Assembly (NCBI RefSeq): GCF_046119375.1
Contig: NW_027362767.1
Location: forward strand, 426,932,001-426,996,000
DNA length: 64,000 nucleotides
Direction: 5' to 3'
From: Phyllobates terribilis
Lineage: Eukaryota
The position numbers were made by a program, and so were the translations under genes. Below, in pieces: positions 6,033 to 51,200 of the stretch (its first letter is position 1; each line of letters starts with the position of its first letter). Under the pieces are notes generated by a model. That model saw nothing but the letters and a program-made list of their open reading frames with translations, had not been told where the DNA came from and made no database searches.

Positions 6033-7659
6033 CAGTACAGACCAGAAGTTTGGACACACCTTCTCATTTAAAGATTTTTCCGTATTTTCATGACTTTAAA
6101 AATGGTACATTCACACTGAAGGCATCAAAACTATGAATTAACACATGTGGAATTATATCCTTAACAAAAAAGTGTGAAACTACTGAAAATATGTCTTATA
6201 TTCTAGGTTCTACAAAGTAGCCACCTTTTGCTTTGATCACTGCTTTGCACACTCTTGGCATTCTCTTGATGAGCTTCAAGAGGTAGTCACCGGAAATGGT
6301 CTTCCAACAATCTTGAAGGAGTTCCCAGAGATGCTTAGCACTTGTTGGCCCTTTTGCCTTCACTCTGCGGTCCAGCTCACCTCAAACCATCTCGATTGGG
6401 TTCAGGTCTGGTGACTGTGGAGGCCAGGTCATCTGGCGTAGCACCCCATCACTCTCCTTCTTGGTCAAATAGCCCTTACATAGCCTGGAGGTGTGTTTGG
6501 GGTCATTGTCCTGTTGAAAAATAAATGATGGTCCAACTAAACGCAAACCGGATGGAATAGCATGCTGCTGCAAGATGCTGTGGTAGCCATGCTGGTTCAG
6601 TATGCCTTCAATTTTGAATAAATCCCCAACAGTGTCACCAGCAAAGCACGCCCACACCATCACACCTCCTCCTCCATGCTTCACGGTGGGAACCAGGCAT
6701 GTAAAGTCCATCCGTTCACCTTTTCTGCGTCACACAAAGACACGGTGGTTGGAACCAAAGATCTCAAATTTGGACTCATCAGACCAAAGCACAGATTTCC
6801 ACTGGTCTAATGTCCATTCCTTGTGTTCTTTAGCCCAAACAAGTCTCTTCTGCTTGTTGCCTGTCCTTAGCAGTGGTTTACTAGCAGCTATTTTACCATG
6901 AAGGCCTGCTGCACAAAGTCTCCTCTTAACAGTTGTTGTAGAGATGTGTCTGTTGCTAGAACTCTGTGTGGCATTGACCTGGTCTCTAATCTGAGCTGCT
7001 GTTAACCTGCGATTTCTGAGGCTGGTGACTCGGATAAACATATCCTCAGAAGTAGAGGTGACTCTCGGTCTTCCTTTCCTGGGGCGGTCCTCATGTGAGC
7101 CAGTTTCTTTGTAGCGCTTGATGGTTTTTGCAACTGTACTTGAGGACACTTTCAAAGTTTTCCCAATTTTTCAGACTGACTGACCTTCATTTCTTAAGGT
7201 AATGAAGGTCACTCATTTTTCTTTACGTAGCTTTTTTCTTGCCATAATACAAATTCTAACAGTCTATTCAGTAGGACTATCAGCTGTGTATCCACCAGAC
7301 TTCTGCACAACACAACTGATGGTCCCAACCCCATTTATAAGGCAAGAAATCCCACTTATTAAACCTGACAGGTCACACCTGTGAAGTGAAAACCATTTCC
7401 GGTGACTACCTCTTGAAGCTCATCAAGAGAATGCCAAGAGTGTGCAAAGCAGTGATCAAAGCAAAAGGTGGCTACTTTGAAGAACCTAGAATATAATACA
7501 TATTTTCAGTTGTTTCACACTTTTTTGTTAAGTATATAATTCCACGTGTGTTAATTCATAGTTTTGATGCCTTCAGTGTGAATGTACAATTTTCAAAGTC
7601 ATGAAAATACGGAAAAATCTTTAAATGAGAAGGTGTGTCCAAACTTTTGGTCTGTAATG
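6033..7659 (-). mobile_element. Tc1/mariner DNA transposon, family A, defective
   Basis: TA on both sides; TIRs CAGTACAGACC(A/G)AAGTTTGGACACACC. Transposase fragments carry [14 protein letters not shown] and SPDLNPIE, with in-frame stops. Near-identical to 49313-50939. Confidence 0.92.
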
Positions 7660-21451: not shown

Positions 21452-21566
21452 GACCCATGCGACTTTTATGATTCTACAGGTTTTTTTTCTCTGACCCTGA
21501 ATGGAGTTTATTGAAAGAGGAAGAAACGAGTCTGTATAGAGAAGTGACGGATCCGGCGCTCTGTGG
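21452..21566 (+). pseudogene. KRAB-A-like exon of ZNF gene 2 with frame disruptions
   Basis: After the acceptor TTTTTCAG: DPCDFYDSTG, then, after a shift in a T8 run, FSDPEWSLLKEEETSLYREV (cf. KRAB-A FxxEEWxLLxxxQxxLYREV). It ends in phase 2 at GTGAGC, which does not fit the next KRAB-B-like exon (22488). Confidence 0.55.
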
Positions 21567-22545
21567 GTGAGCGACCTGCACCCAAGAGGGGCCTGGTATA
21601 CATCCTGCAGGGTAACTTCATACAGGGATATTTTTGGTCCGTGAGCACAAAGGACCAATAGTGGCCAATGCATTAGGACACACGACCAACACCCAACGCT
21701 GACCTAGAGTTGAGTGGAAAACATCACAGCGTGCGCTAGTGCGGTCCGTGCGGAGCAGCCGGCAGAGCTTGCACGTTCAGCGCTCTGCTGATCTGATGCA
21801 ATATAACTCGCCTTCTTTTTATAATCTGCTGGGGGTTTATGTTGGGAGGATTTCTACCTCTGATGGACGGCCCCAATATAAGCTATTTGGTGAATCGTCG
21901 CACACGCAGTACATCGGCTGCAATGTTAATTAAAAAAAATTATGAAAAGGTCGCAACTCGTATCTTACAGCAGCGCACAATTCATCAAGACTGGAGTATG
22001 AGACACCAGTCGTAGTGAATGGAGCCAAATGTGAACTGAGTAGAGTCAGCCAGCCCCCTCCATGAATAGCGCCGGCCACGTGCCGACTCTCTCCGGTGCT
22101 CTGCACTGACTCGTCCACCTTTAGGGACATTTGTTAATAGTATTTAAGTACAAGAAAAACTTTTGGCATCAGATCAACATTGAAAATGAAAGTTTATAAT
22201 AAATTCCATGTACTTATAGCTGCTCTTGCACTTTGCACAGCGAGAAATCCCGACCTGATAGTTGATCTTCCCGTCAGCGGAGTGAAGCAGTATGGCCGCT
22301 TCCCATCACAAATTGTACTCACACAAACTGTTATTGAGATTGATGCACATGTAATGTCCCTCAGTTAATCCTCCTGGACTCCTTCTCTTGATTTTAGATG
22401 ACGATTCATTTAAGAGTCCACAGTGTTTTCTTTTGCTCCCACGTCGGCCATGATGTCGCACCCTGACATTTCTCTGATTGTTACCAGGTTGCATCATTAT
22501 AAGTCCGGACATCATTGCAAAAATCGAACAAGGTGAAGAGAAGAC

Positions 22546-25500
22546 ATGGAAGAGAGAATGGAGCACGTGGAGGAGAAGCTTCGCGGAGGTCAGTAACGGG
22601 GGAGCAACAGAAGGGTTAATGTCTTTTGTAGATCGGCTGCGATCCTGGAGCAGAGACTGCGCATGGCGATGGGATGAAATCGCAAAAGGTGCAGCGAGTT
22701 CACGTCTTAGCAGGAATATGGCGACTACAGGAGCCGGGGAATCCCGTCAGCACCAGAGGCTCTCTGCTCATCACCGATCCTGAGAGCCGGCGCTCTGACG
22801 AGGCCATTGTGGACGGAGCAGCGGTCGTTCATGTGTAATACCGCTCCATTCATATGGATGGGCGCTTCAGAGCATCGGTTCTTGGTGCCCAGTGATCGGG
22901 AAGTAAACTTTCAGACTTGAGGATACCCCTTTAAATCCTTTGTTCAGCGCCACTTTCTTCCATCTACGGAGGTCAGTGGTGCTGGAGACGTCACTTTTGC
23001 ACAGCAAGGACGCATGCAGGATCAGCAGGTGTCACACTTCTGTCCTATTCATCAGAGGTGCACAGGGATGTGCAGAACCTCCCGATGCAGAGAAGGGACC
23101 GGATATCCCCTTTATGTGGTATTGAGTTCACAGGGGAGAAATCCTTTTTTTTAAGATAAATGTGATGGGTTGTTTGCATCATTATTCTCGTCAGCCGTCC
23201 GCAGGGTGATATCAGACAGATTTACTCTTTCATTTAATAATTACAATTTATGTTATTGATAAAAAAATCTCCTTTTTCAGAATCTGTAATTGTGAAGCCG
23301 GACATCGAATCCAAGATAAAAGAAGGGAAGCCGGTGATTATAACTATTCCTATAGATGAGGAGTGCAAGTCTTCAGGTGAGCAGCCAGATAGTCATGAAC
23401 ATAAAGGAGGCTTAAGATTTAGAGATCTGCAGATGAAGAACACATGGCTGGTGTAGCGCTGCAGCCCTGCCTGATATTTCCCACGTTTTGCACAGTGGTG
23501 ATCTCGGGCTGCCACCAGTGCGGAGAACTTCAGCCGCCTCATTCACTCACACAGCTCCGCGCAGCACCGTCTCGGGCAGCTGTGAATGTGACCTCTTCAT
23601 TGCCAGGATCACTGGGGTATCCAAGCTCTTCAGTGGAGTGAAGTGGGTGCCCACCTGTCTCAGTTACTTAGACTGCCCGCCCTGTATTAGCTGCAGTCGG
23701 GGCCACCTGTGATCACCCTGATATATAGGGACGTGGTCACACAGAGCCGCTCTATAGGTCTCCATTGATGGCCTGTATTACACTGTATTACTGTACATTT
23801 GTACAATCTCCTTCACTTTTCCTTCTTTTGGATCCGCAGATGTTTATGTGATTTCCGATCCTTCAGCAGTAAAGCAAGAACCCGAATGTGAGATTAACCC
23901 TTTATCACACAGCAAGTCACCGCCAGAAGGTTTGTTATATATGGCCATCCAGTCTCCTCTCTCCTACCAAGGCCTCATTCAGACCTATGTTTTTCATGTG
24001 CGTGTTTTTCACGTCTAGAACTCAGACCCATTATAATCAGCTGCTCACGTCTGTTTTTCTGTCGACTAAGTGTCCGCAAAAAAAAAAAAAATATATATAT
24101 ATATAATCAGAAACTTCTAATTTATATGTGAGTCATGGATCAGAATCGCCTGTACAGAGCTGATATAGAGTAGCGCGGTGTACGGGTCATGTGTGATCGG
24201 CAATGTCTGCCTTTGCAGAAGTCGTGCTCACCAGGCGGTCGTTTCTGAACCCAAGACATGTGAGGTCTCCTTAGACACTTTTGCGTGCGTCTCCATTGCT
24301 GGCCAGTATCCTCTACATGTAAATTAATCCTAAAAAGAAGTGTTACAGGACGCCATAATCCTCGTTACATACTACGGATGTTCAGTGGAGAACTGCACCG
24401 AATAAACAACGTATCTGATGTCACTTAGTGGAGGTCACAAGGAACAAGATCTCATACAACCTATACCGAGCAGCGGATTTCATCATCATCATCATCATCA
24501 TCTCGTAAATAAACCTTCACAGAGATTTCTTATCTCAGGTTTTCTAATATTCAGAACCACCAAGTAAATACTAGAAAATCTCAAAAAATTAGGATCCCCT
24601 CCAAGGCCTGATCAGTCAGTCTGCTCTTTTTATTGGAAGGCTTAATAAAAAAGAAAAAAACTAAAATTTCTCTTCGAGAATGTAATGATGCCACTGGCTG
24701 TGCCCGAGAGAAGCTGCCGGCTGAACGTAACCAGCCCTGACCTATAAATGGTCGCTTTGGCTTCAACAAACTTTGTAGAAATTAATAGTACAAGTGAATA
24801 TAAGAAACTTTGTAATAAATCTTATAAGAGAAACCTGCTTCTTTCTCTGCTTACGAGCCACTGCTTCCCCCTCTACCCGCGGTCTCCTGAACTCATCATT
24901 CACTCTATAAAATAGCCAAAAATGTGGTGAGAACAAAACCCGACCAGCTGCGTGTATAAGAGAGGAAGAGAGGTTAAAAAGCAGAGATTGTGTAGCTGCT
25001 TTCTAGTAAGTAATTTATCTCATTGCAGCACTGGATTCACAGCTACACTGCTCAGTAACGCTGTGTAATGTCCTCTGTGCTGCTCTCTTTCAAGTAATTT
25101 CTCTCCCCAGTGCTGGATTCGCAGCCACATTGCTTAGTAATGCTGTATAATGTCCTCCATGATGCTGCTGCTGCTTTTGGACATGTGCTTCATAAAGACA
25201 GTAGAGCAGGAATCCCTCATGTCTGTGTGTGGTGGGTATGGGAGACTTAAAGGGGTAATCCCATCTCCAAGATCCCATCCCTATATGTAGTAGGTATAAT
25301 AATAATAATATTAGTAAATATCTTCAATTAGAAATGTAGTATAGTTCTCCTGATTCGCTAGTGGTCGTAACCATGGATACCTAAGGTCCTGCACATGAGG
25401 AAAGATACTTAGCGAATCAGAAAAACTATACTACATTTCTAATTGGAGGTATTTGCTAATATTATTATTATTACTCCCACTACATATTGGAATAGGATCT

Positions 25501-28500
25501 TAGAGATGGGAATACCCTTTTAATAACCGCCAGTTTGACCTCAAAGACAACTGGTAATTTTAGAGACTAATTCTAAAGAGGGGGAAAATTTGTGTAAAGT
25601 GCAGGATAGAAGTCACATAACGGCCAGGAATAGTGTAAATCCTCAAGTACACATGTATGGATGTGAATTTCTTGTATTTCTGTATGTTGTCTTAGTCACT
25701 TTTCCTTCTTTTGGATCCGCAGACATTTATGTGATTTCCGATAATTCAACAATAAAACAAGAACCGAAACCTGAGATTAACCCTTTACCGCACAGCAAGT
25801 CACCGTCAGAAGGTTTGTTGTAGATCTCTATCTGTTCATTACTACTTTCCCAGCCATTGGCAAGTATCGGGGCTACCCCTGTGAAAAGCGCGACCCTGGG
25901 CCTGATCTCATATTAGTTTCTCCAGACTTAAATAATAAAGCGTGCGCTCCCACTCCAACGCGTTTCCTGCCCTGTCAGGAGCTATGATAGGGCAACGAAG
26001 TGTCGGGACCATAGTGAAGCGGCAGTGACGCCTCCGCATTGTCCGTATCTTCCTTTTAAGGCGAATGCCACTCCTACTGGTGGGCTTGGTTCTATAGCTG
26101 GCCAATAAGGAGAAAGGAGGTGTGGCCATCTGATAGCGCTCACCTCCCTTAAAGCCACAGACAAAGTCTGAAGCTGAGTAAAGTTACGAAGGAAAAGAGT
26201 AAAATCATATTATAAGTGATATATGACACATCTCTAGTGATTTATGACTTACAGTGGGGCTATAATTAAAGACACTGGATAGTCGCTGCATAGGAAGGGT
26301 TCATTTTCCCCTTGTAGATGGGTAAATACAGGTGATGTCACCAGCTGTGCCTGCCCCTCCAGGAAGCAGCTGTAGTCAGGAGCCACCAGTGGTCACCCGG
26401 ACATGTAGAGCCGGACAGATGGAGCCGCTGCTATAGGATATAATTACATTTGTATAATTTCATTGAATTTTTCTTCTTTTGCCTCCTCAGATGTTTATGT
26501 GATTCCTGATACTTCACCCATAAAGCAAGAACCTGAATCTGAGATGCGCCCTTTACCGCTCAGCAAGTCACCGGCAGAAGGTTTGTTGTAGAACTACATC
26601 TGGCCACTGCTAGTGTATTTTCCCGGCCATTGGCAAATATCTGGTATGATGCTGCGAAAGGAGTGACCCTTGGCCTGACCCCACTTATAGTTTCTGCAGA
26701 CTCAAATATTGAAACCTGAGCTCCCGCTCCAACGTGTTTCCTGCCCCATCAGGAGCTGAGACAAGAGCAGCAAGGTGTCCGGACCATAGTGAACCGGCAG
26801 TGATAGCTCAGCGTTGGCCGCATCTTCCTTTTAAAGCCAAAGCCACTCCTACTGGTGGGCTGGGTTCTGCAGCTGGCCAATAAAGGAGTAAGGAGGTGTG
26901 GCCATTTGATGGCTCTCCCTTCTCTTAAAGCCACAGATGCAGGAAAAAAAGAGTAAAACCAGATTATAAGCGACACATCTACAGTAATAACTTATAGTCA
27001 GATAAGACACTGGATGGTCACGCCACACCCTGCATGGGAAGTGTTAGTTTTTCCCCACGGCTTCCCTTCCAGATGTAATGACTACATTTTTCTTTTGGAT
27101 CCGCAGAGGTTTATGTGATTCCTGATACTTCACCGATAAAGCAAGAACCTGAATCGCAGATTAACCCTTTACCGGGGAGCAAGTCACCGCAACAAGGTTT
27201 GTTACATGTGAACATCTGGTATCCAGTCCCCTCAGTACTAATTAATAAAATATAATGTGTCATTAAACGGAATGTGTCATCAGAAAATGAAAACATTTTT
27301 TTTTTTTTTCAAATCATTTTTTTGTTTTATATATATATATATATATACATTATTTATTTCATTTTAAAGTTTGGCTATTTTAAATCCTAAATCCCTGGGT
27401 TTTTTTTTTCAGGAAATCCATGTGTACATTAGCAGCAGTAGACAGACCCCGACCTTATATTTTGTATTGCTGCAGCTAATGAGCATGTGCAAAGGTCATT
27501 GTGCAGGAGAGGGAGGAGGTGATCTGTGATATCATCTATTGTGAATGGTGGATCCTGTGTTATCTACTGTATATAGAGGTGTTATCAGTCATTGTACAGG
27601 AGAAGGAGGAGGTGATCTGTGATATCATCTATTGTGAATGGTGGATCCTGTGTTATCTACTGTATATAGAGGTGTTATCAGTCATTGTACAGGAGGAGGA
27701 GGAGGTGAGCTGTGATATCAACTATTGTGAATGGTGGATCCTGTGTTATCTACTGTATATAGAGGTGTTATCAGTCATTGTACAGGAGGAGGAGGTGAGC
27801 TGTGACATCAGCTATTGTGAATGGTGGATCCTGTGTTATCTACTGTATATAGAGGTGTTATCAGTCATTGTACAGGAGGAGGAGGTGAGCTGTGACATCA
27901 GCTATTGTGAATGGTGGAGCCTGTGTTATCTACTGTGTATAGAGGTGTTATCAGTCATTGTACAGGGGGAGGAGGTGAGCTGTGTTATCTTTTGTGAATG
28001 GTAGATCCTGTGTTATCTACTGTATATAGAGGTGTTATCAGTCATTGTACAGAAGGAGGAGGTGAGCTGTGATATCACCTATTATGAATAGTGGATCCTG
28101 TGTTCACACCTGTATATACAGTAGATATCAGTCGTTGTAATCCTGCCTCTGATGATATGGAAACTCCTGTAAACTCTTCCTGTAAGGACAGGATGTATGA
28201 GTCTACATATGTAGACATCATGTAGTGAAGTCCTTGAATTCTCGGACCCTGCAGATTACAGCTCAGAGGATGAGACGATGGATTGAGGCAGATTTTGCAT
28301 AGGAATATAATAGTAATTGGACTTTTTGACATCAGTTTTGGGTTTCCAGGATGCCTTCCTTATAAATATATTATTTTTCAGAATCTGCATCTATTATAAT
28401 CAATATCGATGATGATGAAGATGAAGCCTGTTATGAAAATGTGCAACAAACGCCTAAACCGGAGAAGAATGCCGCAGGTACTGAATAGTCTCCACGTCTC

Positions 28501-29797
28501 GTGTGAAGGGCAGCTGCGGAGACGGTCTGAGTGCTGATCTTACATTACTGATGTGACCTTTCTCGAATTGTTAAAGAGGTATCCCGCCATAAATGTCTGA
28601 TAGATACCGGTCCTACCACTGGGATACGTCTGTTTCTTGATGGGACGGTTCCCAGACCTCCTGTCACTCGTGCACTCGTCCGAGCCGGTATCAGTAATGT
28701 TGACGTCACCGGCTCTGCTTGCTTCCACTACAGACATGTGTGCAGTCGGAATACCCCTTTAAGTGATAACTTTTTTTTTCCACCTGTATAAACTATATAT
28801 ACATTTCTCTTTTGCAGACTGGATCATTCAGGACGTCATCACCCCAGTGCAGTCTAAAAATGCTCAGAATCAGAAGGAACCTGTCAATGTCTGGTTCGTG
28901 AAGAGCATGAAGGTTAGCAACGAAAACCAGAACCAGTCTGGGGGGAACTCCGTAAAGAGTGAGCATAAAAGTACGGAGAAGAAACCTGGGGTAAACGTGC
29001 TGAACTCGTCTGCACCCCATCCGTCTTCCCACAATGCCGCCGGCTTTCTGGAAAATCAGGCTCTGCACAACGGGCAGGCTTCCAAGTTTGGGGCTCATCC
29101 TGGTAACATGGCCGTGGGGGGCAGCTTCATGGATGAGATGGAAGAGAAGATCCAGGTTTGCTCCCAGTGTTCGATGTGCTTCACCTCACTGTCCGATCTG
29201 GAATCGCACATGAAGGGACACAAGGAGGGAAGCTCCTGGATCTGCTCCGATTGCGGGAAATCGTATTACACCAAATCGAGTCTCGATAGACACCAGATAA
29301 CACATATAAGGGAGCAACCCCTGAAGTGTCACGATTGCGGCAAAGGTTTCGCCAAGCAAATCAATTTTGAGATGCATCTGCGGCTCCACGCCGGGGAAGT
29401 GCTGTTCCCTTGCACCGAGTGCGAAAAGCTGTTTAACTCCAAGGCCGCTTGTGACCGACACATACGAGCGCACAAGATGGAGCGGCCGCACGTCTGTCCG
29501 CAGTGCGGGAAAGGCTTTCTGTACAATGGCTGCCTCATCAGGCACATCAGGGTCCACACCGGGGAGCGGCCGTTTCCTTGTCCCGAATGCGGAAGATGCT
29601 TCCGTCAGACTTCGGCTCTCAACCGTCACGTAAAGACTCATTCTGGCGAGAAGCCGTATGACTGCGCGGAGTGCGGGAAATGTTTCTCCCATCAGTCCGA
29701 TCTGAACCGACACAAGGAGACCCACAGACGAGAGCAACACTTCGCACAGTGTGCGCCAAGCAGCGAGAGCTCCTTACCCACTTACATTGTTTTATGA
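22546..29797 (+). CDS. C2H2 zinc-finger gene 2, minimal spliced model of 524 aa
   Basis: Exons 22546-22588, 23281-23376, 23840-23929, 25723-25812, 26491-26580, 27107-27196, 28382-28477 and 28818-29797; all GT-AG, all phase 1, sum 1575 nt. Seven C2H2 fingers lie in the last exon. The start exon is uncertain; the last exon is secure. Confidence 0.75.
25251..25519. mobile_element. TTAA MITE (T2-like), palindromic
   Basis: TTAA|AGGGGTAATCCCATCTC ... GAGATGGGAATACCCTT|TTAA with inverted arms. Confidence 0.75.
27495..28135. repeat. About 90-93-bp minisatellite (about 7 units) in a ZNF gene 2 intron
   Basis: Unit GTCATTGTACAGGAGGAGGAGGTGAGCTGTGA...TGTATATAGAGGTGTTATCA. Confidence 0.92.
28575..28758. 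mobile_element. Short TTAA MITE in the last intron of ZNF gene 2
   Basis: TTAA|AGAGGTATCCCG ... CGGAATACCCCT|TTAA. Confidence 0.65.
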
Positions 29798-31488: not shown

Positions 31489-32687
31489 TGTAGTGCCGGC
31501 GTCCCTGCCCTCTGTTAGGCAGGGACGCTGCTCCCCTCACCGCTCTGCCCCGTGCCCGGCGTCCCTCTCCCGCTCTGCTGTCAGCGCGCGCTCCTTCCCG
31601 GCGTCCTCCTCCCGCTCTGCTCTCAGCGCGCGCTCCTTCCCGGCCCCTGTGCTTAGGGCGCGCGCGCGCGCGCTCCCCTCCTCTTAAAGGGGCCGCGCGC
31701 GCCGTCCTAAGGAGTCCCCAGCCAATGGCCGGAGGACTTCATCATATATAAGGCACCTCCTCCAAAATGGAGGTGCCCGAGCAATGTTGTTTGCACCTGT
31801 GTCTCACCTGTGCTTCAGCCCTCAGGTCCCGTTGCCAGTTACCTGCCAGTTACCTGTCAGATTCCTGCCTGATTACTTGCTACCTGTCTGCTAGCCTGAG
31901 GTCCGACGGTCTGCCTTACTACTCCTGTCAGTCTGTCTAAGGACCAGCCTGCCCGCTCACCTGGGAGCGCACCTCAGCTACCTGCCTGCTTGCCTGAGGT
32001 CCGACGGTCTGCCTTACAACTCCGGTCAGTCTGTCTATGGACCAGCTTGCCCGCTCACCTGGGAGCGCTTCTCCGTTACCTGCCTGCTTGCCAGCCCGGA
32101 GGCTCCGCTGTCACGTGCTGTGACCACCAGCTACTCCAGACTCTTGCCCGCTCACCTGGGAGCGCTTCTCCGCTACCTGCCTGCTTGCCTGCCCGGAGGC
32201 TCCGCAGTCACGTGCTGTGACCACCAGCTACTCCAGACTCTTGCCCGCTCACCTGGGAGCGCTTCTCCGCTACCTGCCTGCTTGCCTGCCCGAAGGCTCC
32301 GCTGTCACGTGCTGTGACCACCAGCTATTCCTGAGACTCTTGCCCGCTCACCTGGGAGCGCTTCTCCGTTACCTGCCTGCTTGCCTACCTGGAGGCTCCG
32401 CCGTCACGTGCTGTGACCACCTGCTATTCCAGAGACTCTCGCTTGCTCACCTGGGAGCACACATTCTTCATCTGCCTTGCTAGCCTACCTGGAGGTTCAG
32501 CCATCACAGGTCGTACCTACCCTTTATCCAGAGACTGCCCCGATCACTTGCCGTGTCCTCCTACCCGTACACCCAGAGACTGTCCTGGTCACCTCCTGTG
32601 ACTACCTGCCTGGTCGCCACCCGCTCCTTTACAAGGACCGCCCCCTTGTATTGTAGCCCAGAGGTTCCGCCTCCCAGACCCGTTACA
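31489..32687 (+). repeat. 5' LTR (1199 bp) with TATA box and an internal array of about 97-bp units
   Basis: TGTAGTGCC...CGTTACA; CCAAT near 31721, TATATAA at 31745-31751; four units of 97-99 bp from 32046. Confidence 0.95.
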
Positions 32688-32700
32688 GTTTGCTCGGGCC

Positions 32701-33651
32701 ATGGAACCCGGTGGCACCCAAGCTCCCTCGCTCTCGGACCTCTGTCTTGAACTGTCCCGTCAGAGGTCCCAACAGGAGTCCATCCTGCGTCACCTGCGGA
32801 ATGTCAATACTCGCCTGAACACTCTGTCTGATCCACCAACAACCTCCGCCAGTGCCATATCTTGCAATCCGGCAGCTCCGCTGCCCACTAATACCATGGT
32901 ATCCTACCCCGGACCCCGGCTTTCTGCACCTCCTCGCTTCGGAGGCGACTCCGTCCAGGCTCGGGGCTTCTTAAATCAGTGCACCCTGCACTTTGAACTT
33001 TTGTCCCACCAGTTTAACTCCGACCGGGCCAAAATTGCCTTCATCATGTCCCATCTCATCGGGGAGGCCCTGGCCTGGCTAAATCCTCTATGGGAGAGAG
33101 GAGACCCCCTGGTGTCCAACTTGCCTGCTTTTCTCACGGCTTTCCGGAAAGTCTTCGACGAACCCGGACGGAAGACCTCATCTGCATCATCGTTGCTACG
33201 CCTCCGTCAGGAGAGTCTCACCGTGGGCCAATATGCCATACGGTTCCGTACCCTTGCCTCGGAGCTGGCCTGGGATAACGACGCTCTGGTTTCCGTCTTC
33301 TGGGAGGGTCTGTCCGGCCGTATTAAAGATGAACTTGCCGGTCGGGACATTCCTACCACTCTCGATGACTTAATAACTCTTGCCACCCGGATTGACCTAC
33401 GGTTCCAGGAGCGTGCCAGAGAGGTCACCCGTGAGAGGAGGTTACCACGTCTAGCTCCTACTTTTCAGAAACCCGTCACTCCTTCTGTCTCTAACCAGGT
33501 ACACCCTCCTGAGCCTATGCAGGTCGACCAGACCAAGATGGTCAAGACCCGTCAGGACTTACGCCGTGCCGAGGGGACCTGCTTCTACTGTGGCAGTAAG
33601 GAGCACCGGATCCGTGCCTGCCCGGAGAGGTCGGGAAACGCCTGTGTCTAG
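32701..33651 (+). CDS. Gag (316 aa) with CCHC zinc knuckle
   Basis: PEG10/Sushi-like capsid region (RGFLNQCTLHF...LRLRQ...QYAIRFRTLASELAWD), PEPMQVD motif and CFYCGSKEHRIRAC. Confidence 0.95.
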   Translation: MEPGGTQAPSLSDLCLELSRQRSQQESILRHLRNVNTRLNTLSDPPTTSASAISCNPAAPLPTNTMVSYPGPRLSAPPRFGGDSVQARGFLNQCTLHFELLSHQFNSDRAKIAFIMSHLIGEALAWLNPLWERGDPLVSNLPAFLTAFRKVFDEPGRKTSSASSLLRLRQESLTVGQYAIRFRTLASELAWDNDALVSVFWEGLSGRIKDELAGRDIPTTLDDLITLATRIDLRFQERAREVTRERRLPRLAPTFQKPVTPSVSNQVHPPEPMQVDQTKMVKTRQDLRRAEGTCFYCGSKEHRIRACPERSGNACV

Positions 33652-33693
33652 GTTCGCTCAGAGAGGTCCACCTAGACAAGAATAAATCCTCTC
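33633..33693 (+). promoter_or_regulatory. -1 ribosomal frameshift signal: G GGA AAC plus H-type pseudoknot
   Basis: Heptamer 33633-33639 is phased to gag codons; 5-nt spacer; stem 1 TGTCTAGGT (33645-33653)/ACCTAGACA (33670-33678); stem 2 GAGAGG (33661-33666)/CCTCTC (33688-33693). Confidence 0.85.
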
Positions 33694-36600
33694 CATCCCT
33701 GCTGTTGTCAGTTTCAATCGTCTACGGGGAGAACCGTTATTTCGAACTAGCCCAACTGGACTCTGGAGCAGCCGGGAATCTTATTTCACAGTCCCTGGTA
33801 GAGAAATACCGCATCCCCACCAAACCTCTGGCTGTACCCTTGTCTGTGGCTGCCGTGGATGGGGGGCTCTTACCACGCCCCATCCAACTCATCACCGAAT
33901 CCATTACTCTGCAGGTGGGAATGCTGCATTCTGAAAGTATCTCCTTTCATGTTCTGCCTGGACTCTCTCACGCCCTCTTGCTAGGTCTGCCTTGGCTCCA
34001 GAAACATGCACCCGTGCTTGACTGGCAAACCGGAGAAGTCCTTCGCTGGGGACAAGACTGTCATAAGACCTGCCTGGTTCCCGTCCATCCCGTCCGTCCC
34101 TCTCCTACCCCAGCTAATCTACCTGGACTTCCAATTCCTTATTGGTCTTATGCTGATGTCTTTAATAAAAAGGAGGCAGAGACATTACCCCCTCATAGAC
34201 CATACGACTGTCCCATCGACCTGTTACCCGGTACTACTCCTCCCCGTGGGCGTATTTATCCTTTATCCGCTGCTGAGACCCGGTCGATGTCCGAATATAT
34301 TGAGGAGAATCTGGCCAGGGGATTCATCCGGAAATCTACCTCCCCGGCGGGAGCAGGCTTCTTTTTCGTCAAAAAGAAGGACGGCTCTCTCCGTCCCTGT
34401 ATAGACTATAGAGGCCTAAACCAGATCACGGTGAAGAATAAGTACCCCCTTCCGCTCATTCCAGAATTATTTGATCGTCTGAGGGGGGCTAGAATCTTCA
34501 CCAAACTAGACCTCCGTGGGGCGTACAACCTGGTTCGTATCCGTCAAGGGGATGAATGGAAGACGGCATTCAACACCCGGGACGGCCACTATGAATACCT
34601 GGTAATGCCCTTTGGTCTCTGTAACGCTCCTGCCGTCTTTCAAGAGTTGGTCAATGACATCTTCCGGGACCTTCTCTACTCCTGCGTAGTGGTGTACCTG
34701 GACGACATCTTGGTCTTCTCTCCGGATCTCCAGACTCACCGGAGGGACGTTCGTCAGGTCCTGCTCAGGCTCAGGCAGAATCACCTCTTCGCTAAATACG
34801 AGAAGTGCCTCTTTGAGCAGACCTCGCTTCCGTTTTTGGGCTACATTATTTCTCAGACCGGCCTACGAATGGATCCAGAGAAACTGTCTGCCATCGAGAA
34901 ATGGCCCCGACCGGAGGGGTTGAAGGCCATTCAGCGGTTCCTGGGCTTCGCCAACTACTACCGCCTCTTCATACCACACTTCTCTTCCCGGACTGCCCCA
35001 ATTTCCGCGCTCACCCGTAAGGGTACTAATCCCAAAGAGTGGCCGCCCGAAGCAGAAGAAGCCTTTCTTTCCTTAAAACAGGCCTTCTCTTCCGCCCCGG
35101 TGCTGCATCGCCCGGACGGCAACAAGCAGTTCTTCCTGGAAGTGGACGCCTCCTCCTCTGGAGCTGGAGCGGTACTTACTCAAAAATCTTCTTCCGGGAG
35201 GATGGTAACTTGCGGCTTCTTCTCTAAACTCTTCTCCTCCTCAGAGCGCAATTATTCCATAGGAGATCGAGAGTTATTGGCCATCAAACTGGCATTGGAG
35301 GAGTGGCGTTACCTGCTTGAGGGGGCTCTTCACCCGGTAATAATTTACACTGACCACAAGAACTTGGCTTACCTCCAGCATGCCCAGAGACTTAACCCGC
35401 GCCAAGCCCGGTGGTCCTTGTTTTTTGCTCGTTTTGATTTTGTCCTTCATTTTCGCCCGGCTGACAAAAACGTCAAGGCGGACGCCTTGTCTCGATCCTT
35501 TCTGGTATCTGATCTCGAGGAAGATCCGAAACACATCATCGATCCCGCCAGAGTAATGCAGGTGGCTCCCGTGAGTCTAAATCGTCTCCCTCCCGGAAAG
35601 ACGTTCGTATCAGTACCTGATCGGGAGAAGATCCTTCACTGGGGTCACTCGTCTAAACTGGCTGGCCACGCTGGTCAGAAGAAGACCCTCCAGCTTATTT
35701 CCCGGCACTACTGGTGGCCTACCCTGCACAAGGATGTAATAGACTTTGTTTCTGCCTGTGTGTCCTGCGCCCGCAACAAGGTTCCGAGACATCTGCCAGC
35801 CGGTCGCCTCCTTCCGCTCCCAGTACCTGCTGCCCCCTGGCAGCATATTGCAATGGACTTCATAACTGACCTCCCACTCTCTGCCGGTTGTACGGTCATT
35901 TGGGTGGTCGCTGACCGCTTCTCCAAGATGGCTCATTTCGTTCCCCTGCCAGGCCTTCCGTCTGCACCCGAGCTAGCTAGAGACTTTATTCGTCACATCT
36001 TCCGTCTTCATGGCCTGCCCCTCCACATCGTGTCGGATCGTGGGGTACAGTTCACCTCACGCTTCTGGAGAGCCACTTGTAAACTACTAGACGTCACCCT
36101 GGACTTCTCTTCCGCTTACCACCCACAGTCCAATGGTCAAGTGGAGCGGATCAATCAGAACCTGACCAGTTACCTCCGGCACTTCGTTAATGCCCACCAT
36201 TCTGACTGGGTGGATCTCCTACCATGGGCCGAGTTCTCTTACAATAATCACGAGAGCGAATCCTCCTCCAAATCCCCGTTTTTTGTAGTCTTTGGTCAGC
36301 ATCCTCGGATTCCTTTTCCTGTCTCCACCTCGGTGGACAACCCGGCTGCGGAATCTCTCGTTAGCAAATTTTCCTCCATTTGGGAGAGTACCCGATCCGC
36401 ACTCCTTCAGTCGTCCGAGCGGATGAAAAGACACGCTGACAAAAAACGCCTGGATCCTCCTCAATTTCGTCCAGGAGATAAGGTCTGGCTCTCATCTAAA
36501 TATGTTCGACTCAAGATACCCTCTTACAAGTTAGGGCCTCGGTTCATCGGACCTCTGGAGGTCACCAGTCAGATCAACCCGGTGGCCTATAAATTGAAAC

Positions 36601-37166
36601 TCCCGGCCAACTTACGGATCCCTAACTCCTTCCATGTATCTCTCCTCAAACCTGTGGTACTTAACTCTTTTTCCAAGTCTACAGGTACGCCTCCTGCTCC
36701 GGTTTCTGCTGAGGACGAGTTTGAGGTAGAGAACATTCTTGCCACCAAAAGGGTAAGAGGAAAGACCTTTTTTCTGGTAGATTGGAAGGGGTTTGGTCCT
36801 GAGGAGAGAACGTGGGAGCCCCGGGAGAACATCCATGCCCCTCTCATCCTAGCTAAATTTCTGTCTGGCCTAAAAAAGGGGGGGCCTAAAGGGGGGGGTA
36901 CTGTAGTGCCGGCGTCCCTGCCCTCTGTTAGGCAGGGACGCTGCTCCCCTCACCGCTCTGCCCCGTGCCCGGCGTCCCTCTCCCGCTCTGCTGTCAGCGC
37001 GCGCTCCTTCCCGGCGTCCTCCTCCCGCTCTGCTCTCAGCGCGCGCTCCTTCCCGGCCCCTGTGCTTAGGGCGCGCGCGCGCGCGCGCTCCCCTCCTCTT
37101 AAAGGGGCCGCGCGCGCCGTCCTAAGGAGTCCCCGGCCAATGGCCGGAGGACTTCATCATATATAA
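33633..37166 (+). CDS. Pol (PR-RT-RNase H-IN-chromodomain) in the -1 frame
   Basis: The -1 frame is open from the slippery site at 33633. Motifs: LDSGA, YLDD, VDASSSGAGAVL, H-H-C-C, DFITDLP/SDRG/GQVER, GPL, and chromodomain EFEVENIL...LVDWKGFGPEERTWEP. The ORF runs into the 3' LTR. Confidence 0.95.
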   Translation, partial: GKRLCLGSLREVHLDKNKSSPSLLLSVSIVYGENRYFELAQLDSGAAGNLISQSLVEKYRIPTKPLAVPLSVAAVDGGLLPRPIQLITESITLQVGMLHSESISFHVLPGLSHALLLGLPWLQKHAPVLDWQTGEVLRWGQDCHKTCLVPVHPVRPSPTPANLPGLPIPYWSYADVFNKKEAETLPPHRPYDCPIDLLPGTTPPRGRIYPLSAAETRSMSEYIEENLARGFIRKSTSPAGAGFFFVKKKDGSLRPCIDYRGLNQITVKNKYPLPLIPELFDRLRGARIFTKLDLRGAYNLVRIRQGDEWKTAFNTRDGHYEYLVMPFGLCNAPAVFQELVNDIFRDLLYSCVVVYLDDILVFSPDLQTHRRDVRQVLLRLRQNHLFAKYEKCLFEQTSLPFLGYIISQTGLRMDPEKLSAIEKWPRPEGLKAIQRFLGFANYYRLFIPHFSSRTAPISALTRKGTNPKEWPPEAEEAFLSLKQAFSSAPVLHRPDGNKQFFLEVDASSSGAGAVLTQKSSSGRMVTCGFFSKLFSSSERNYSIGDRELLAIKLALEEWRYLLEGALHPVIIYTDHKNLAYLQHAQRLNPRQARWSLFFARFDFVLHFRPADKNVKADALSRSFLVSDLEEDPKHIIDPARVMQVAPVSLNRLPPGKTFVSVPDREKILHWGHSSKLAGHAGQKKTLQLISRHYWWPTLHKDVIDFVSACVSCARNKVPRHLPAGRLLPLPVPAAPWQHIAMDFITDLPLSAGCTVIWVVADRFSKMAHFVPLPGLPSAPELARDFIRHIFRLHGLPLHIVSDRGVQFTSRFWRATCKLLDVTLDFSSAYHPQSNGQVERINQNLTSYLRHFVNAHHSDWVDLLPWAEFSYNNHESESSSKSPFFVVFGQHPRIPFPVSTSVDNPAAESLVSKFSSIWESTRSALLQSSERMKRHADKKRLDPPQFRPGDKVWLSSKYVRLKIPSYKLGPRFIGPLEVTSQINPVAYKLKLPANLRIPNSFHVSLLKPVVLNSFSKSTGTPPAPVSAEDEFEVENILATKRVRGKTFFLVDWKGFGPEERTWEPRENIHAPLILAKFLSGLKKGGPKGGGTVVPASLPSVRQGRCSPHRSAPCPASLSRSAVSARSFPASSSRSALSARSFPAPVLRARARARSPPLKGAARAVLRSPRPMAGGLHHI

Positions 37167-38929: not shown

Positions 38930-42555
<3,626 letters not shown>

Positions 42556-48200: not shown

Positions 48201-51200
48201 GTCTAACAAAGCCAACTGGCTGTTGAAATGCGCAGTCAGCTAGCCGCCTTCATACATGGCTCATTATGGGGGCCCACCTAATACTATTTCTATTCAACAT
48301 GAGCTCTATCGGTACACGCCACATTAACCGGCCAATATGATGGGAATGCCGACTCTTTATAGTGAGTGGGATCATTGGGCTCAGCTCAGTCGTAGTTTTT
48401 GGCTCTTCATTTGAAGGAGTTTTCCACCACTATTATACGACCTCAGGAGAGATCATCAATATCATATCGGTGTGCGTCCGACACTCGGCAGTCGCACCAG
48501 TCAGAAGTTATTTGCACCGGCAGCGGACGGAAGTAATCCTTGAATCGAGTTGCAATGTGTAGCAGCCGCTACTGGATACTGCAGAGCAGCCGCTAGTCAA
48601 AAGTGGCCGCTGCAGTGAATAACAGATGAGTGGTGTAGGGGTCCTGTGTGATGGACCCCCACCGATCTGATGTTAATAACCTCTCCTAAGGACACTGGTA
48701 AGAGGTCTTGTGCTAAAAGAGTCATTAGTTAGGCCTGAATACACATCAGAGAAAATTTGGAGGACTCCACAGGGACATCAGTCTGTCCAATGTGTATGGA
48801 GGCCACATAATGGCAGATGTCAGGGAAGAGATGGATTGAGTGTGTACCTGTATGGGGGGGCCAGGAGGGATAGCTGTCGTTATGTAAGGTGTAGAAAATA
48901 CAGGGTGTTGTGTGGTTTTGTGTTGTGCACACTCACCTGCACAGCCGGGGTATCTGGACGGGATGGATAATAAAATGTAACGTTCTTGAACTCAAATTCA
49001 CCATGTAAATCGTTTGGGCAAAGTGATCCCGATGTGGAGATCTGAGGCTCCCGATCCAGGTACTGAAAGATCTTGGAGGCGACTCCTGCGGAATGGGTTA
49101 TCTCACTGAGCATGTGAAAAAGGCTCTGAAAAGCAAAGGAGGAAAAAAGGTCAAGACCAGTGAAACGTGACAGTGCTCCATACCATGGGTATCCTTGCCA
49201 GTCTTGTGTACTAATGTTCAGCCCCCATTTACTTCAATAGGACCAGGGTCGCAGTACCCGAGAATGGCCACTACACAGTGTATGGAGCTGCTTATATACG
49301 TATATATACATACCGTACAGACCAAAAGTTTGGACACACCTTCTCATTTAAAGATTTTTCTGTATTTTCATGACTATGAAAATTGTACATTCACACTGAA
49401 GGCATCAAAACTATGAATTAACACATGTGGAATTATATACTTAACAAAAAAGTGTGAAACAACTGAAAATATGTCTTATATTCTAGGTTCTTCAAAGTAG
49501 CCACCTTTTGCTTTGATGACTGCTTTGCACACTCTTGGCATTCTCTTGATGAGCTTCAAGAGGTAGTCACCAGAAATGGTTTTCACTTCACAGGTGTGCC
49601 CTGTCAGGTTTAATAAGTGGGATTTCTTGCCTTATAAATGGGGTTGGGACCATCAGTTGTGTTGTGCAGAAGTCTGGTGGATACACAGCTGATAGTCCTA
49701 CTGAATAGACTGTTAGAATTTGTATTATGGCAAAAAAAAAGCAGCTAAGTAAAGAAAAATGAGTGGCCATCATTACTTTAAGAAATGAAGGTCAGTCAGT
49801 CCGAAAAATTGGGCAAACTTTGAAAGTGTCCCCAAGTGCAGTTGCAAAAACCATCAAGCGCTACAAAGCAACTGGCTCACTTGAGGACCGCCCCAGGAAA
49901 GGAAGACCAAGAGTCACCTCTGCTTCTGAGGATAAGTTTATCCGAGTCACCAGCCTCAGAAATCGCAGGTTAACAGTAGCTCAGATTAGAGACCAGGTCA
50001 ATGCCACACAGAGTTCTAGCAGCAGACACATCTCTTCAACAACTGTTAAGAGGAGACTTTGTGCAGCAGGCCTTCATGGTAAAATAGCTGCTAGGAAACC
50101 ACTGCTAAGGACAGGCAACAAGCAGAAGAGACTTGTTTTGGCTAAAGAACACAAGGAATGGACATTAAACCAGTGGAAATCTGTGCTTTGGTCTGATGAG
50201 TCCAAATTTGAGATCTTTGGTTCCAACCACCGTGTTTTTGAGCGACGCAGAAAAGGTGAACGGATGGACTCTACATGCCTGGTTCCCACCGTGAAGCATG
50301 GAGGAGGAGGTGTGATGGTGTGGGGGTGCTTTGCTGGTGACACTGTTGGGGATTTATTTAAAATTGAAGGCATACTGCACCAGCATGGCTACCACAGCAT
50401 CTTGCAGCGGCATGCTATTCCATCCGGTTTGCGTTTAGTTGGACCATCATTTATTTTTCAACAGGACAATGACCCCAAACACACCTCCAGGCTGTGTAAG
50501 GGCTATTTGACCAAGGAGGAGAGTGATGGGGTGCTACGCCAGATGACCTGGCCACCACAGTCACCAGACCTGAACCCAATCGAGATGGTTTGGGGTGAGC
50601 TGGACCGCAGAGTGAAGGCAAAAGGGCCAACAAGTGCTAAGCATCTCTGGGATCTCCTTCAAGATTGTTGGAAGACCATTTCCGGTGACTACCTCTTGAA
50701 GCTCATCAAGAGAATGCCAAGAGTGTGCAAAGCAGTCATCAAAGCAAAAGGTGGCTATTTTGAAGAACCTAGAATATAAGACATATTTTCAGTTGTTTTA
50801 CAATTTTTTGTTAAGTATATAATTCCATATGTGTTAATTCATAGTTTTGATGCCTTCAGTGTGAATGTACAATTTTCATAGTCATGAAAATACAGAAAAA
50901 TCTTTAAATGAGGTGTGTCCAAACTTTTGGTCTGTACTGTATATATATAGATAGCCTTTGGAAAACATGCACCATTGTGATTTCTTTGGCCTCGTACCCG
51001 TGTGTAGTCGCTAGACTCCATCTGGTAGATGATGAAGGACACCATCGCCCCGGTGGTCATCTCTCCTTCAAGGATTAATGTGTGTCCATAGCATAACATG
51101 GAAACCTGCGACCCCAGATTGATGATCTGAAGGGAAGAAAAGCGTCTTAATCATCAGGGCACACAGATTATCACTACTATCAACACAGATATCAGTCACA

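Follow-up and report, generated by a model that had tools for sequence, protein, structure and literature searches.

Short motifs that carry a SUMO acceptor lysine or bind SUMO are known to confer repression on DNA-binding proteins. In 149 of 166 human repression domains, repression was found to require the acceptor consensus psi-K-x-E, and mutation of the SUMO-interacting motif (SIM) weakened 81 of 113 repressing tiles, while 12.3% of the non-repressing human tiles also carry psi-K-x-E (bioRxiv 10.1101/2022.08.26.505496). When flanked by Pro or Gly, a SUMO motif constitutes a synergy control motif (PMC3554661). In the synergy control and SUMO-site repression domains of GR, AR, Nurr1, SP3 and MGA (IKEE in the last two), a proline-flanked [IV]KxE lies where the chain of a DNA-binding transcription factor is disordered; repression, or the limiting of synergy, requires such short motifs, and in some cases they suffice for it. 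The exact synergy control spacing rule is P-x(0-4)-[IV]KxE-x(0-3)-P. The SIM is defined by a four-residue core with at least three V, L or I and by acidic or Ser/Thr flanks, and SIMs acting in cis enhance SUMOylation of the substrates that carry them, as in TDG, DAXX, USP25 and BLM (PMC12751080). A different route is taken by the KRAB zinc-finger proteins (KRAB-TRIM28/KAP1), whose KRAB-A and KRAB-B exons are followed by a C-terminal C2H2 array encoded in one exon. In this contribution, we describe a zinc-finger gene of the poison frog Phyllobates terribilis which lies in a 64,000-nucleotide stretch of DNA (hereafter, the window; assembly GCF_046119375.1, contig NW_027362767.1, positions 426,932,001 to 426,996,000) and which bears features of all these systems. 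It has the exon layout of a KRAB zinc-finger gene, and between the remains of its KRAB exons and its fingers it contains four tandemly duplicated 90-nt exons, each encoding two short cores, a SIM-like [VI]YV[IV]xD and, 4-5 residues further on, [IV]KQE.

The locus departs from each of the described systems in its own way. Compared to synergy control motifs, the putative SUMO site of the frog gene stands in a 30-residue cassette with an exon of its own, is present four times (1-18 times in relatives) and always has YV[IV]xD upstream of it. In DAXX, USP25, BLM and TDG, the hydrophobic core with its acidic or Ser/Thr flank is also found in the same chain as the acceptor lysine, but there only one SIM and one lysine are involved, often at a large distance from each other, whereas in the frog units they are separated by 4-5 residues, iterated, and accompanied by an invariant Tyr that goes beyond the SIM pattern. 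The KRAB exons, which in a typical KRAB zinc-finger gene precede the finger exon in frame, are here broken and located upstream of the start codon, although the ortholog from Mixophyes has a full KRAB. The likeness to multi-SIM and poly-SUMO scaffolds (RNF4, ZNF451, PML bodies), i.e., a single disordered chain with more than one SIM-like motif and SUMO site, is one of sequence pattern only: the frog protein has no RING or other ligase domain, its motifs are attached to a DNA-binding array, and its valency equals the number of exons. Finally, as in other cases of tandem duplication of symmetrical exons, exon and intron were copied head to tail with the frame kept and with a species-dependent copy number. 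This mechanism is an ordinary one; what is unusual is that the motif pair is kept in every copy, from 1 to 18 copies. Taken singly, repression motifs of the SUMO-site and SIM type, SIM-dependent SUMOylation in cis and the tandem duplication of exons are already known; what is new is their combination as an exon-sized iterated cassette in an uncharacterised frog family.

The four exons (Table 1) had been recognized in the original prediction as duplicated phase-1/1 exons with a SUMO-consensus motif, and all of them are found where they were placed. Their eight splice sites are intact, with a polypyrimidine tract and CAG before and GTTTGT after each exon, and only one frame of each exon is open, the other two being interrupted by stops. 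The first residue of the encoded peptides (D, D, D and E in units 1-4, respectively) comes from a codon composed of a G and two exon bases that is split across the intron, and therefore all the introns are phase 1. Since all linker exons are symmetrical, any number of them keeps the reading frame. The four exons are mutually 79-86% identical and are equal in length and phase. The shared intron sequence that had been noticed for two of the units belongs to units 2 and 3: local blastn aligns positions 25700-26161 to 26468-26937 over 470 columns with 80% identity, and the aligned part consists of the 90 nt of the exon, 23 nt upstream of it and about 350 nt of the downstream intron. The remaining pairs of units have 114-146 nt in common around the exon. 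As the homology of units 2 and 3 runs into the intron, exon and intron must have been copied together; the four exons arose by tandem duplication of an exon plus intron.

The introns between and after the units contain repeats of other kinds. The 1.8-kb intron that separates unit 1 from unit 2 contains an inverted repeat at 25247-25523 (114 nt, 88% complementary, with a 49-nt loop). This repeat resembles a MITE-type (miniature inverted-repeat transposable element) insertion, which would explain the extra length of this intron in comparison with the others. A low-complexity T-run and TA-run is present at 27281-27326 in the intron that follows unit 4. The intron before the acidic exon harbors a tandem repeat (27495-28139, 7.1 copies) with a 90-nt period and a spurious 167-codon open reading frame. 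We considered it as a possible relative of the 90-nt exons and rejected this, since the sequences are unrelated and the matching period is a coincidence.

Table 1. Exons, exon relics and duplicated intron sequence of the zinc-finger gene (positions in the window)
Feature	Positions	Strand	Remarks
Vestigial KRAB-A exon, ...FFFSDPEWSLLKEEETSLYREVTDPALCG in the KRAB frame	21452-21566	+	now 5' untranslated region or non-coding
Exon with vestigial KRAB-B box (22488-22540, GCIIISPDIIAKIEQGEE) and start codon at 22546 (MEERMEHVEEKLRG)	22488-22588	+
96-nt phase-1/1 exon, KRAB-B-like duplicate, SVIVKPDIESKIKEGKPVIITIPIDEECKSS	23281-23376	+	VKPD; IITI core, then acidic tail
Repeat unit 1, (D)VYVISDPSAVKQEPECEINPLSHSKSPPE	23840-23929	+
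Repeat unit 2, (D)IYVISDNSTIKQEPKPEINPLPHSKSPSE	25723-25812	+	best match, R. variabilis unit 1
Intron segment copied along with the exon	25813-26161	+	copy at 26581-26937; local blastn; repeat families D3, D4, D5, D7
Repeat unit 3, (D)VYVIPDTSPIKQEPESEMRPLPLSKSPAE	26491-26580	+	best match, R. variabilis unit 2
Repeat unit 4, (E)VYVIPDTSPIKQEPESQINPLPGSKSPQQ	27107-27196	+	best match, R. variabilis unit 3
96-nt phase-1/1 acidic exon, SASIIINIDDDEDEACYENVQQTPKPEKNAA	28382-28477	+	IINI core, then DDDEDE
Terminal exon: DWIIQDVITP...VNVWFVKSMKV stretch, VKSE site, seven C2H2 fingers, stop	28818-29797	+

The pattern of conservation singles out the two cores. We aligned 18 units from seven species: four from the window, three each from Ranitomeya variabilis, Ranitomeya imitator and Leptodactylus, two from E. 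coqui, two from a transcript of another frog (sequencing run SRR32581850) and one from Rhinoderma. The Tyr, the Lys and a downstream Pro (P21) are kept in 18 of the 18 units, the Asp, the Gln and the Glu in 17, the core Val in 16 and the core Ile in 15. The columns between and after the cores are kept in 33-56% of the units, and several columns beside KQE in 50% or less, so that the expectation of the original prediction that KQE should be conserved above its neighbors is borne out. The psi-K-x-E consensus is present in 17 of the 18 units from the seven species, including all four units of the window (VKQE in the first and IKQE in the other three). From the composition of the non-finger peptides 0.05 occurrences per unit would be expected, and therefore chance does not explain the pattern. 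When the last unit is aligned for five orthologs, Y, D, K, Q, E and P, and no other residues, are invariant. The units of the window differ from the best-matching R. variabilis units at 13 positions, none of which is the Y, the V-I core, the K, the Q, the E or the Pro-Leu; a single difference replaces a core Asp by Asn. In Pseudophryne, 14 of 18 units have [IV]KQE and one more has IKQD, and both this IKQD and the MKEE of E. coqui fit psi-K-x-[ED].

The SIM-like core at the start of each 90-nt exon, [VI]YVI[SP]D, was missed in the original prediction. Its four residues (VYVI or IYVI) include at least three V, L or I in every unit, as do IITI and IINI in the two 96-nt exons. In each unit the core is preceded by D or E and followed by [SP]D[x][ST], and IINI is followed by DDDEDE; the five-residue flanks of the SIM-like cores contain 3-7 D, E, S or T residues. 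Three of the four units of the window conform to the proline spacing rule given above, and unit 2 is without the upstream Pro. In an AlphaFold2 model of an ortholog, the non-finger region has a mean predicted local distance difference test (pLDDT) score of 34, with 273 of its 276 residues below 50, and is thus predicted to be disordered, as SIMs and SUMO sites usually are. The NIDDD of the acidic exon is invariant in five hyloid orthologs and is also present in Mixophyes.

Other peptides noted in the original prediction are all present in the two 96-nt exons and in the terminal exon, and they have fared differently as putative motifs. The VKSE of the terminal exon occupies a position where psi-K-x-E is kept in orthologs (VKNE, IKSE, IKVE, VKDE). 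In contrast, the VKPD of the first 96-nt exon ends in Asp and corresponds to EKPD, TKPD or EEPD in orthologs, in which neither the hydrophobic residue nor the Lys is constant; it resembles the KPD of a KRAB-B box, and we do not retain it as a conserved SUMO site. Among the best conserved non-finger stretches in all orthologs, including those from Pseudophryne and Mixophyes, is the beginning of the terminal exon (28818-28920, from DWIIQDVITP to VNVWFVKSMKV).

The exons belong to an open gene model that begins at the ATG at position 22546, in an exon ending at 22588, and ends with the stop at 29797. From the exon lengths alone (43 + 96 + 4 x 90 + 96 + 980 nt), it comprises 524 codons and the stop. 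The same Met starts the R. variabilis RefSeq protein. The terminal exon holds the whole C-terminal C2H2 array (Pfam zf-C2H2, seven stretches, E 1e-34) and is 91% identical to the R. variabilis protein (P0001). In a Logan transcript contig from the run SRR32581850 (L001), the KRAB relic, the start, the KRAB-B-like exon, two units, the acidic exon and the finger exon are joined without introns, and the junctions fall exactly at the exon ends of the window. Units are also present in the RefSeq models of R. variabilis, Rhinoderma, Leptodactylus, E. coqui, Mixophyes and Pseudophryne. Given the spliced contig and the models from these six frogs, the four exons are genuine coding exons of the gene, in agreement with what had been claimed. 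For P. terribilis itself, four small sequencing runs of 119-164 million letters contain the entire terminal exon, and this would be hard to reconcile with low-coverage DNA of a multi-gigabase genome.

In R. variabilis, the orthologous gene is LOC143806148 (isoform X2 is P0001), which is colinear with the gene of the window and 86-94% identical to it exon by exon. A word-indexed protein search found five orthologs, all of them from hyloid frogs, and the same kind of search with the N-terminal 168 residues of the ortholog returned no match except itself, while a further one was dominated by generic zinc-finger proteins. A profile of the non-finger region compared with 1.84 billion cluster representatives gave three matches, namely the hyloid cluster, Pseudophryne corroboree LOC134949554 and Mixophyes fleayi LOC142101988. 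As Pseudophryne and Mixophyes are members of Myobatrachoidea and poison frogs belong to Hyloidea, the family is restricted to neobatrachian frogs, as judged from the annotated proteins searched. Every member of it is annotated as "uncharacterized", and Pfam assigned no family to any of the short exons or to the whole non-finger regions of two orthologs.

Upstream of the units, the gene retains the traces of a KRAB domain. The segment 21452-21566 matches the Pfam KRAB profile PF01352 (profile positions 11-31) with 20.3 bits, just under the cut-off of 20.4 (E 4.4e-4). Its KRAB frame is interrupted by a stop at 21469-71, 14 nt are deleted in comparison with L001, and the segment precedes the ATG; the gene thus has here no in-frame KRAB-A box of the kind that defines KRAB zinc-finger proteins. 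The corresponding part of L001 reaches 42.8 bits against KRAB, yet no in-frame ATG is present upstream of it. The KRAB-B relic at 22488-22540 is out of frame (-1) with the ATG at 22546, as seen from two tblastn high-scoring segment pairs in different frames obtained with P0001 and P0002. Elsewhere the decay has taken other forms: the Leptodactylus KRAB-B relic carries a stop, Rhinoderma isoform X1 keeps KRAB-B and nothing else of KRAB, and the KRAB-A box is absent from every hyloid protein model beginning at the conserved Met and from every Pseudophryne model. The Mixophyes fleayi ortholog has complete KRAB-A and KRAB-B in frame (PF01352), together with one unit. The gene descends from a KRAB zinc-finger gene whose KRAB has decayed in this lineage. 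The exon 23281-23376 (...VKPDIESKIKEGKP...), which is 94% identical to P0001, resembles KPDIIAKIEQGEE of the KRAB-B relic and appears to have been copied from the KRAB-B exon. In Mixophyes (L003, 14944-16941), it is the KRAB-B-like exon and not the SUMO-motif exon that is amplified, to four copies carrying VKPE, VKTE or VKSE, which means that the linker exon that underwent amplification in this gene is not the same in all frog lineages. It was proposed earlier that the module may replace KRAB. The KRAB is indeed broken here by the stop, the deletion and the -1 shift, but an intact KRAB and one unit coexist in Mixophyes, and therefore replacement of KRAB was not the origin of the module.

The number of units varies from 1 to 18 between species: one in Rhinoderma and Mixophyes, two in E. 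coqui and in the SRR32581850 transcript, three in Leptodactylus and the two Ranitomeya species, four in the window and 18 in Pseudophryne. Copy number across species had been named as a check in the original prediction. When protein models are compared, unit 1 of the window has no counterpart in Ranitomeya. The Pseudophryne unit is 57 residues long and consists of a 24-residue motif part and a 33-residue second part; the gene spans 215 kb in this frog, and its exon structure there is deduced from isoform differences only. The 15 RefSeq isoforms of P. corroboree differ by whole units. Relative to X1, isoform X3 is without the 24-residue motif piece of one unit, X4-X9 each are without a different 57-residue unit, X10-X13 are without two units and X14 is without three. 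These isoforms fit the earlier suggestion that valency can be adjusted by exon skipping, but ambiguous mapping of reads in near-identical repeats could also produce them, and we treat them as a lead and not as proof. Taken at the level of motifs, the "exon-tunable multivalent SUMO/SIM module" of the original prediction is partly supported and is now a reasonable, better-founded hypothesis.

What might such units do? Our favored reading, to which we give about an even chance, is that they make up a SUMO-dependent repression module of self-priming cassettes in an MHC-linked (major histocompatibility complex), KRAB-derived frog zinc-finger gene. Each unit would be a stretch of about 30 disordered residues with a SIM-like [VI]-Y-V-[IV]-x-D core, an acidic or phosphorylatable flank and then a mostly proline-flanked [IV]-K-Q-E. 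The SIM-like core would help to bring SUMO-charged UBC9 to the nearby lysine, i.e., SUMOylation would be SIM-dependent and occur in cis. The resulting SUMO array, together with the flanking hydrophobic-acidic exons, would recruit SIM-bearing co-repressors, and the DNA targets of the seven fingers would be repressed without KRAB. The self-priming cassette reading would explain why the two cores stay together at a fixed spacing in every copy. A more far-reaching version, which we regard as rather improbable, is that the SIM-like core and the proline-flanked IKQE constitute an exon-sized, copy-number-tunable repression module that took over from KRAB in neobatrachians, its valency being set over evolution (1 to 18 copies) and perhaps also within the animal by exon skipping.

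A number of points weigh against the self-priming reading. SUMO conjugation, SUMO binding and repression are each deduced from motifs, and the inclusion of the units in mRNA is predicted for this species from the intact sites and frames and from relatives. The flanking exons, which had been described as SIM-like, are so as far as their IITI and IINI cores are concerned; however, the first of them is the KRAB-B-like duplicate, its acidic tail is missing in myobatrachoid frogs, and Pseudophryne proteins lack the acidic exon altogether. The pN/pS ratio (nonsynonymous to synonymous differences) among the four exons of the window is 0.64-0.93, and therefore constraint is confined to a few codons, as one would expect if short motifs are embedded in a disordered linker. 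Within the SIM-like core the Tyr is conserved best, at a position that is free in the SIM pattern, and the codons of the motifs are conserved at synonymous sites as well. The last two observations also figure in other explanations.

It is possible that the repeats are real coding repeats in which YV[IV]xD and IKQE bind some other partner or serve another modification of lysine, with the match to the SUMO and SIM patterns being incidental. A Tyr that a plain SIM does not need and that is nevertheless invariant hints at a more specific partner, the SIM is a "loose" motif, psi-K-x-E occurs in the non-repressing human tiles mentioned above, and the unit matches no Pfam family. Such an explanation would have to account for the joint retention of psi, K and E in 17 of the 18 units, for the proline flanks of the synergy control type in three of the four units of the window, for the position of a hydrophobic-acidic core directly upstream of the lysine, like in SIM-dependent substrates, and for the presence of more hydrophobic-acidic stretches and of a conserved VKSE-type site in the same disordered region. 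We consider this explanation unlikely, while taking it seriously. The codons bring up another one, namely that KQE (AAG CAA GAA) and TAT GTG ATT are kept mainly as exonic splicing enhancers of very short exons in long introns, so that the peptide is a spacer. Across four species Tyr is encoded by TAT in 9 of 9 cases, Gln by CAA in 9 of 10 and Glu by GAA in 9 of 9, whereas the terminal exon uses CAG and CAA in a ratio of 55 to 20 and its conserved Y, D, K, Q and E codons are synonymously different between species in 25-46% of cases; the synonymous differences across species amount to 0.17 for the codons of the motifs, as opposed to 0.38 for the rest of the unit, in a small sample of units that are related by descent and hence not independent. 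The purine-rich AAGCAAGAA may indeed be retained, in addition, because it enhances the splicing of so short an exon, and the synonymous conservation weakens, without removing, the argument at the level of protein. Still, the amino acid pattern survives changes of letters: the psi codon varies freely (ATA, ATC, ATT, GTA, GTG) and still specifies Ile or Val, Lys is encoded by both AAA and AAG, and the MKEE of E. coqui and the IKQD of Pseudophryne are still psi-K-x-[ED]. Constraints on RNA and on protein can coexist, and splicing as the main cause has, in our opinion, a distinctly low probability. Least of all do we expect the four exons to stay outside of the mature mRNA in this species as decaying pseudo-exons or parts of a pseudogene. 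Among the listed runs that hold the last exon none is on record as RNA, and decay has already affected the KRAB part; against this, the eight splice sites and four frames are intact, the 524-codon model is uninterrupted and follows the R. variabilis RefSeq protein in colinear order, the units occur in transcripts and gene models of relatives, and genomic coverage would hardly explain the whole terminal exon in four runs of such a small size. This makes loss of the exons from the mRNA very improbable.

The surroundings of the gene are conserved as well. In Leptodactylus, the order is a KRAB-ZNF gene, the ortholog of LOC143806148 and a gene for a TAP-like ABC transporter, and in Mixophyes it is KRAB-ZNF, the ortholog LOC142101988 and an MHC class I gene; the gene is linked to MHC in three species, and the gene order is kept. 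In the window, positions 35-1405 correspond to the terminal exon of the adjoining paralogous zinc-finger gene, whose Leptodactylus and Mixophyes counterparts have KRAB. Between its two clusters of fingers this exon contains a degenerate internal repeat with recurring (I)DVSF motifs. Directly downstream of the gene lies a Ty3/Gypsy-type long terminal repeat retrotransposon (31879-37166) with open gag (32701-33651) and pol (33705-37166, 1153 codons), which are preceded by 97-98-nt tandem repeats (31879-32536). Tc1/mariner-like transposase open reading frames or fragments are found at 6730-7155 and 40116-40622 on the minus strand and at 41207-41806 and 49763-50779 on the plus strand, the last one being open over 338 codons.

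The investigation of this family is of interest in several respects. As for annotation, the gene is an "uncharacterized LOC" in every frog genome, its 5' exons are relics of KRAB, and TAP2 and MHC class I are its conserved neighbors. Should SUMO play no part, one would be left with a zinc-finger gene of an ordinary lineage-specific kind whose linker has been duplicated. If the reading of the units as SUMO-dependent cassettes is true, the family would be a natural experiment on the finding made in human cells that short SUMO-site and SIM motifs make repression domains, with the cassette present at 1, 2, 3, 4 or 18 copies in orthologous DNA-binding proteins in which KRAB is either intact (Mixophyes) or decayed (poison frogs and others). 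It would then allow one to test how repression scales with SUMO/SIM valency and whether a SUMO module can stand in for KRAB-TRIM28.

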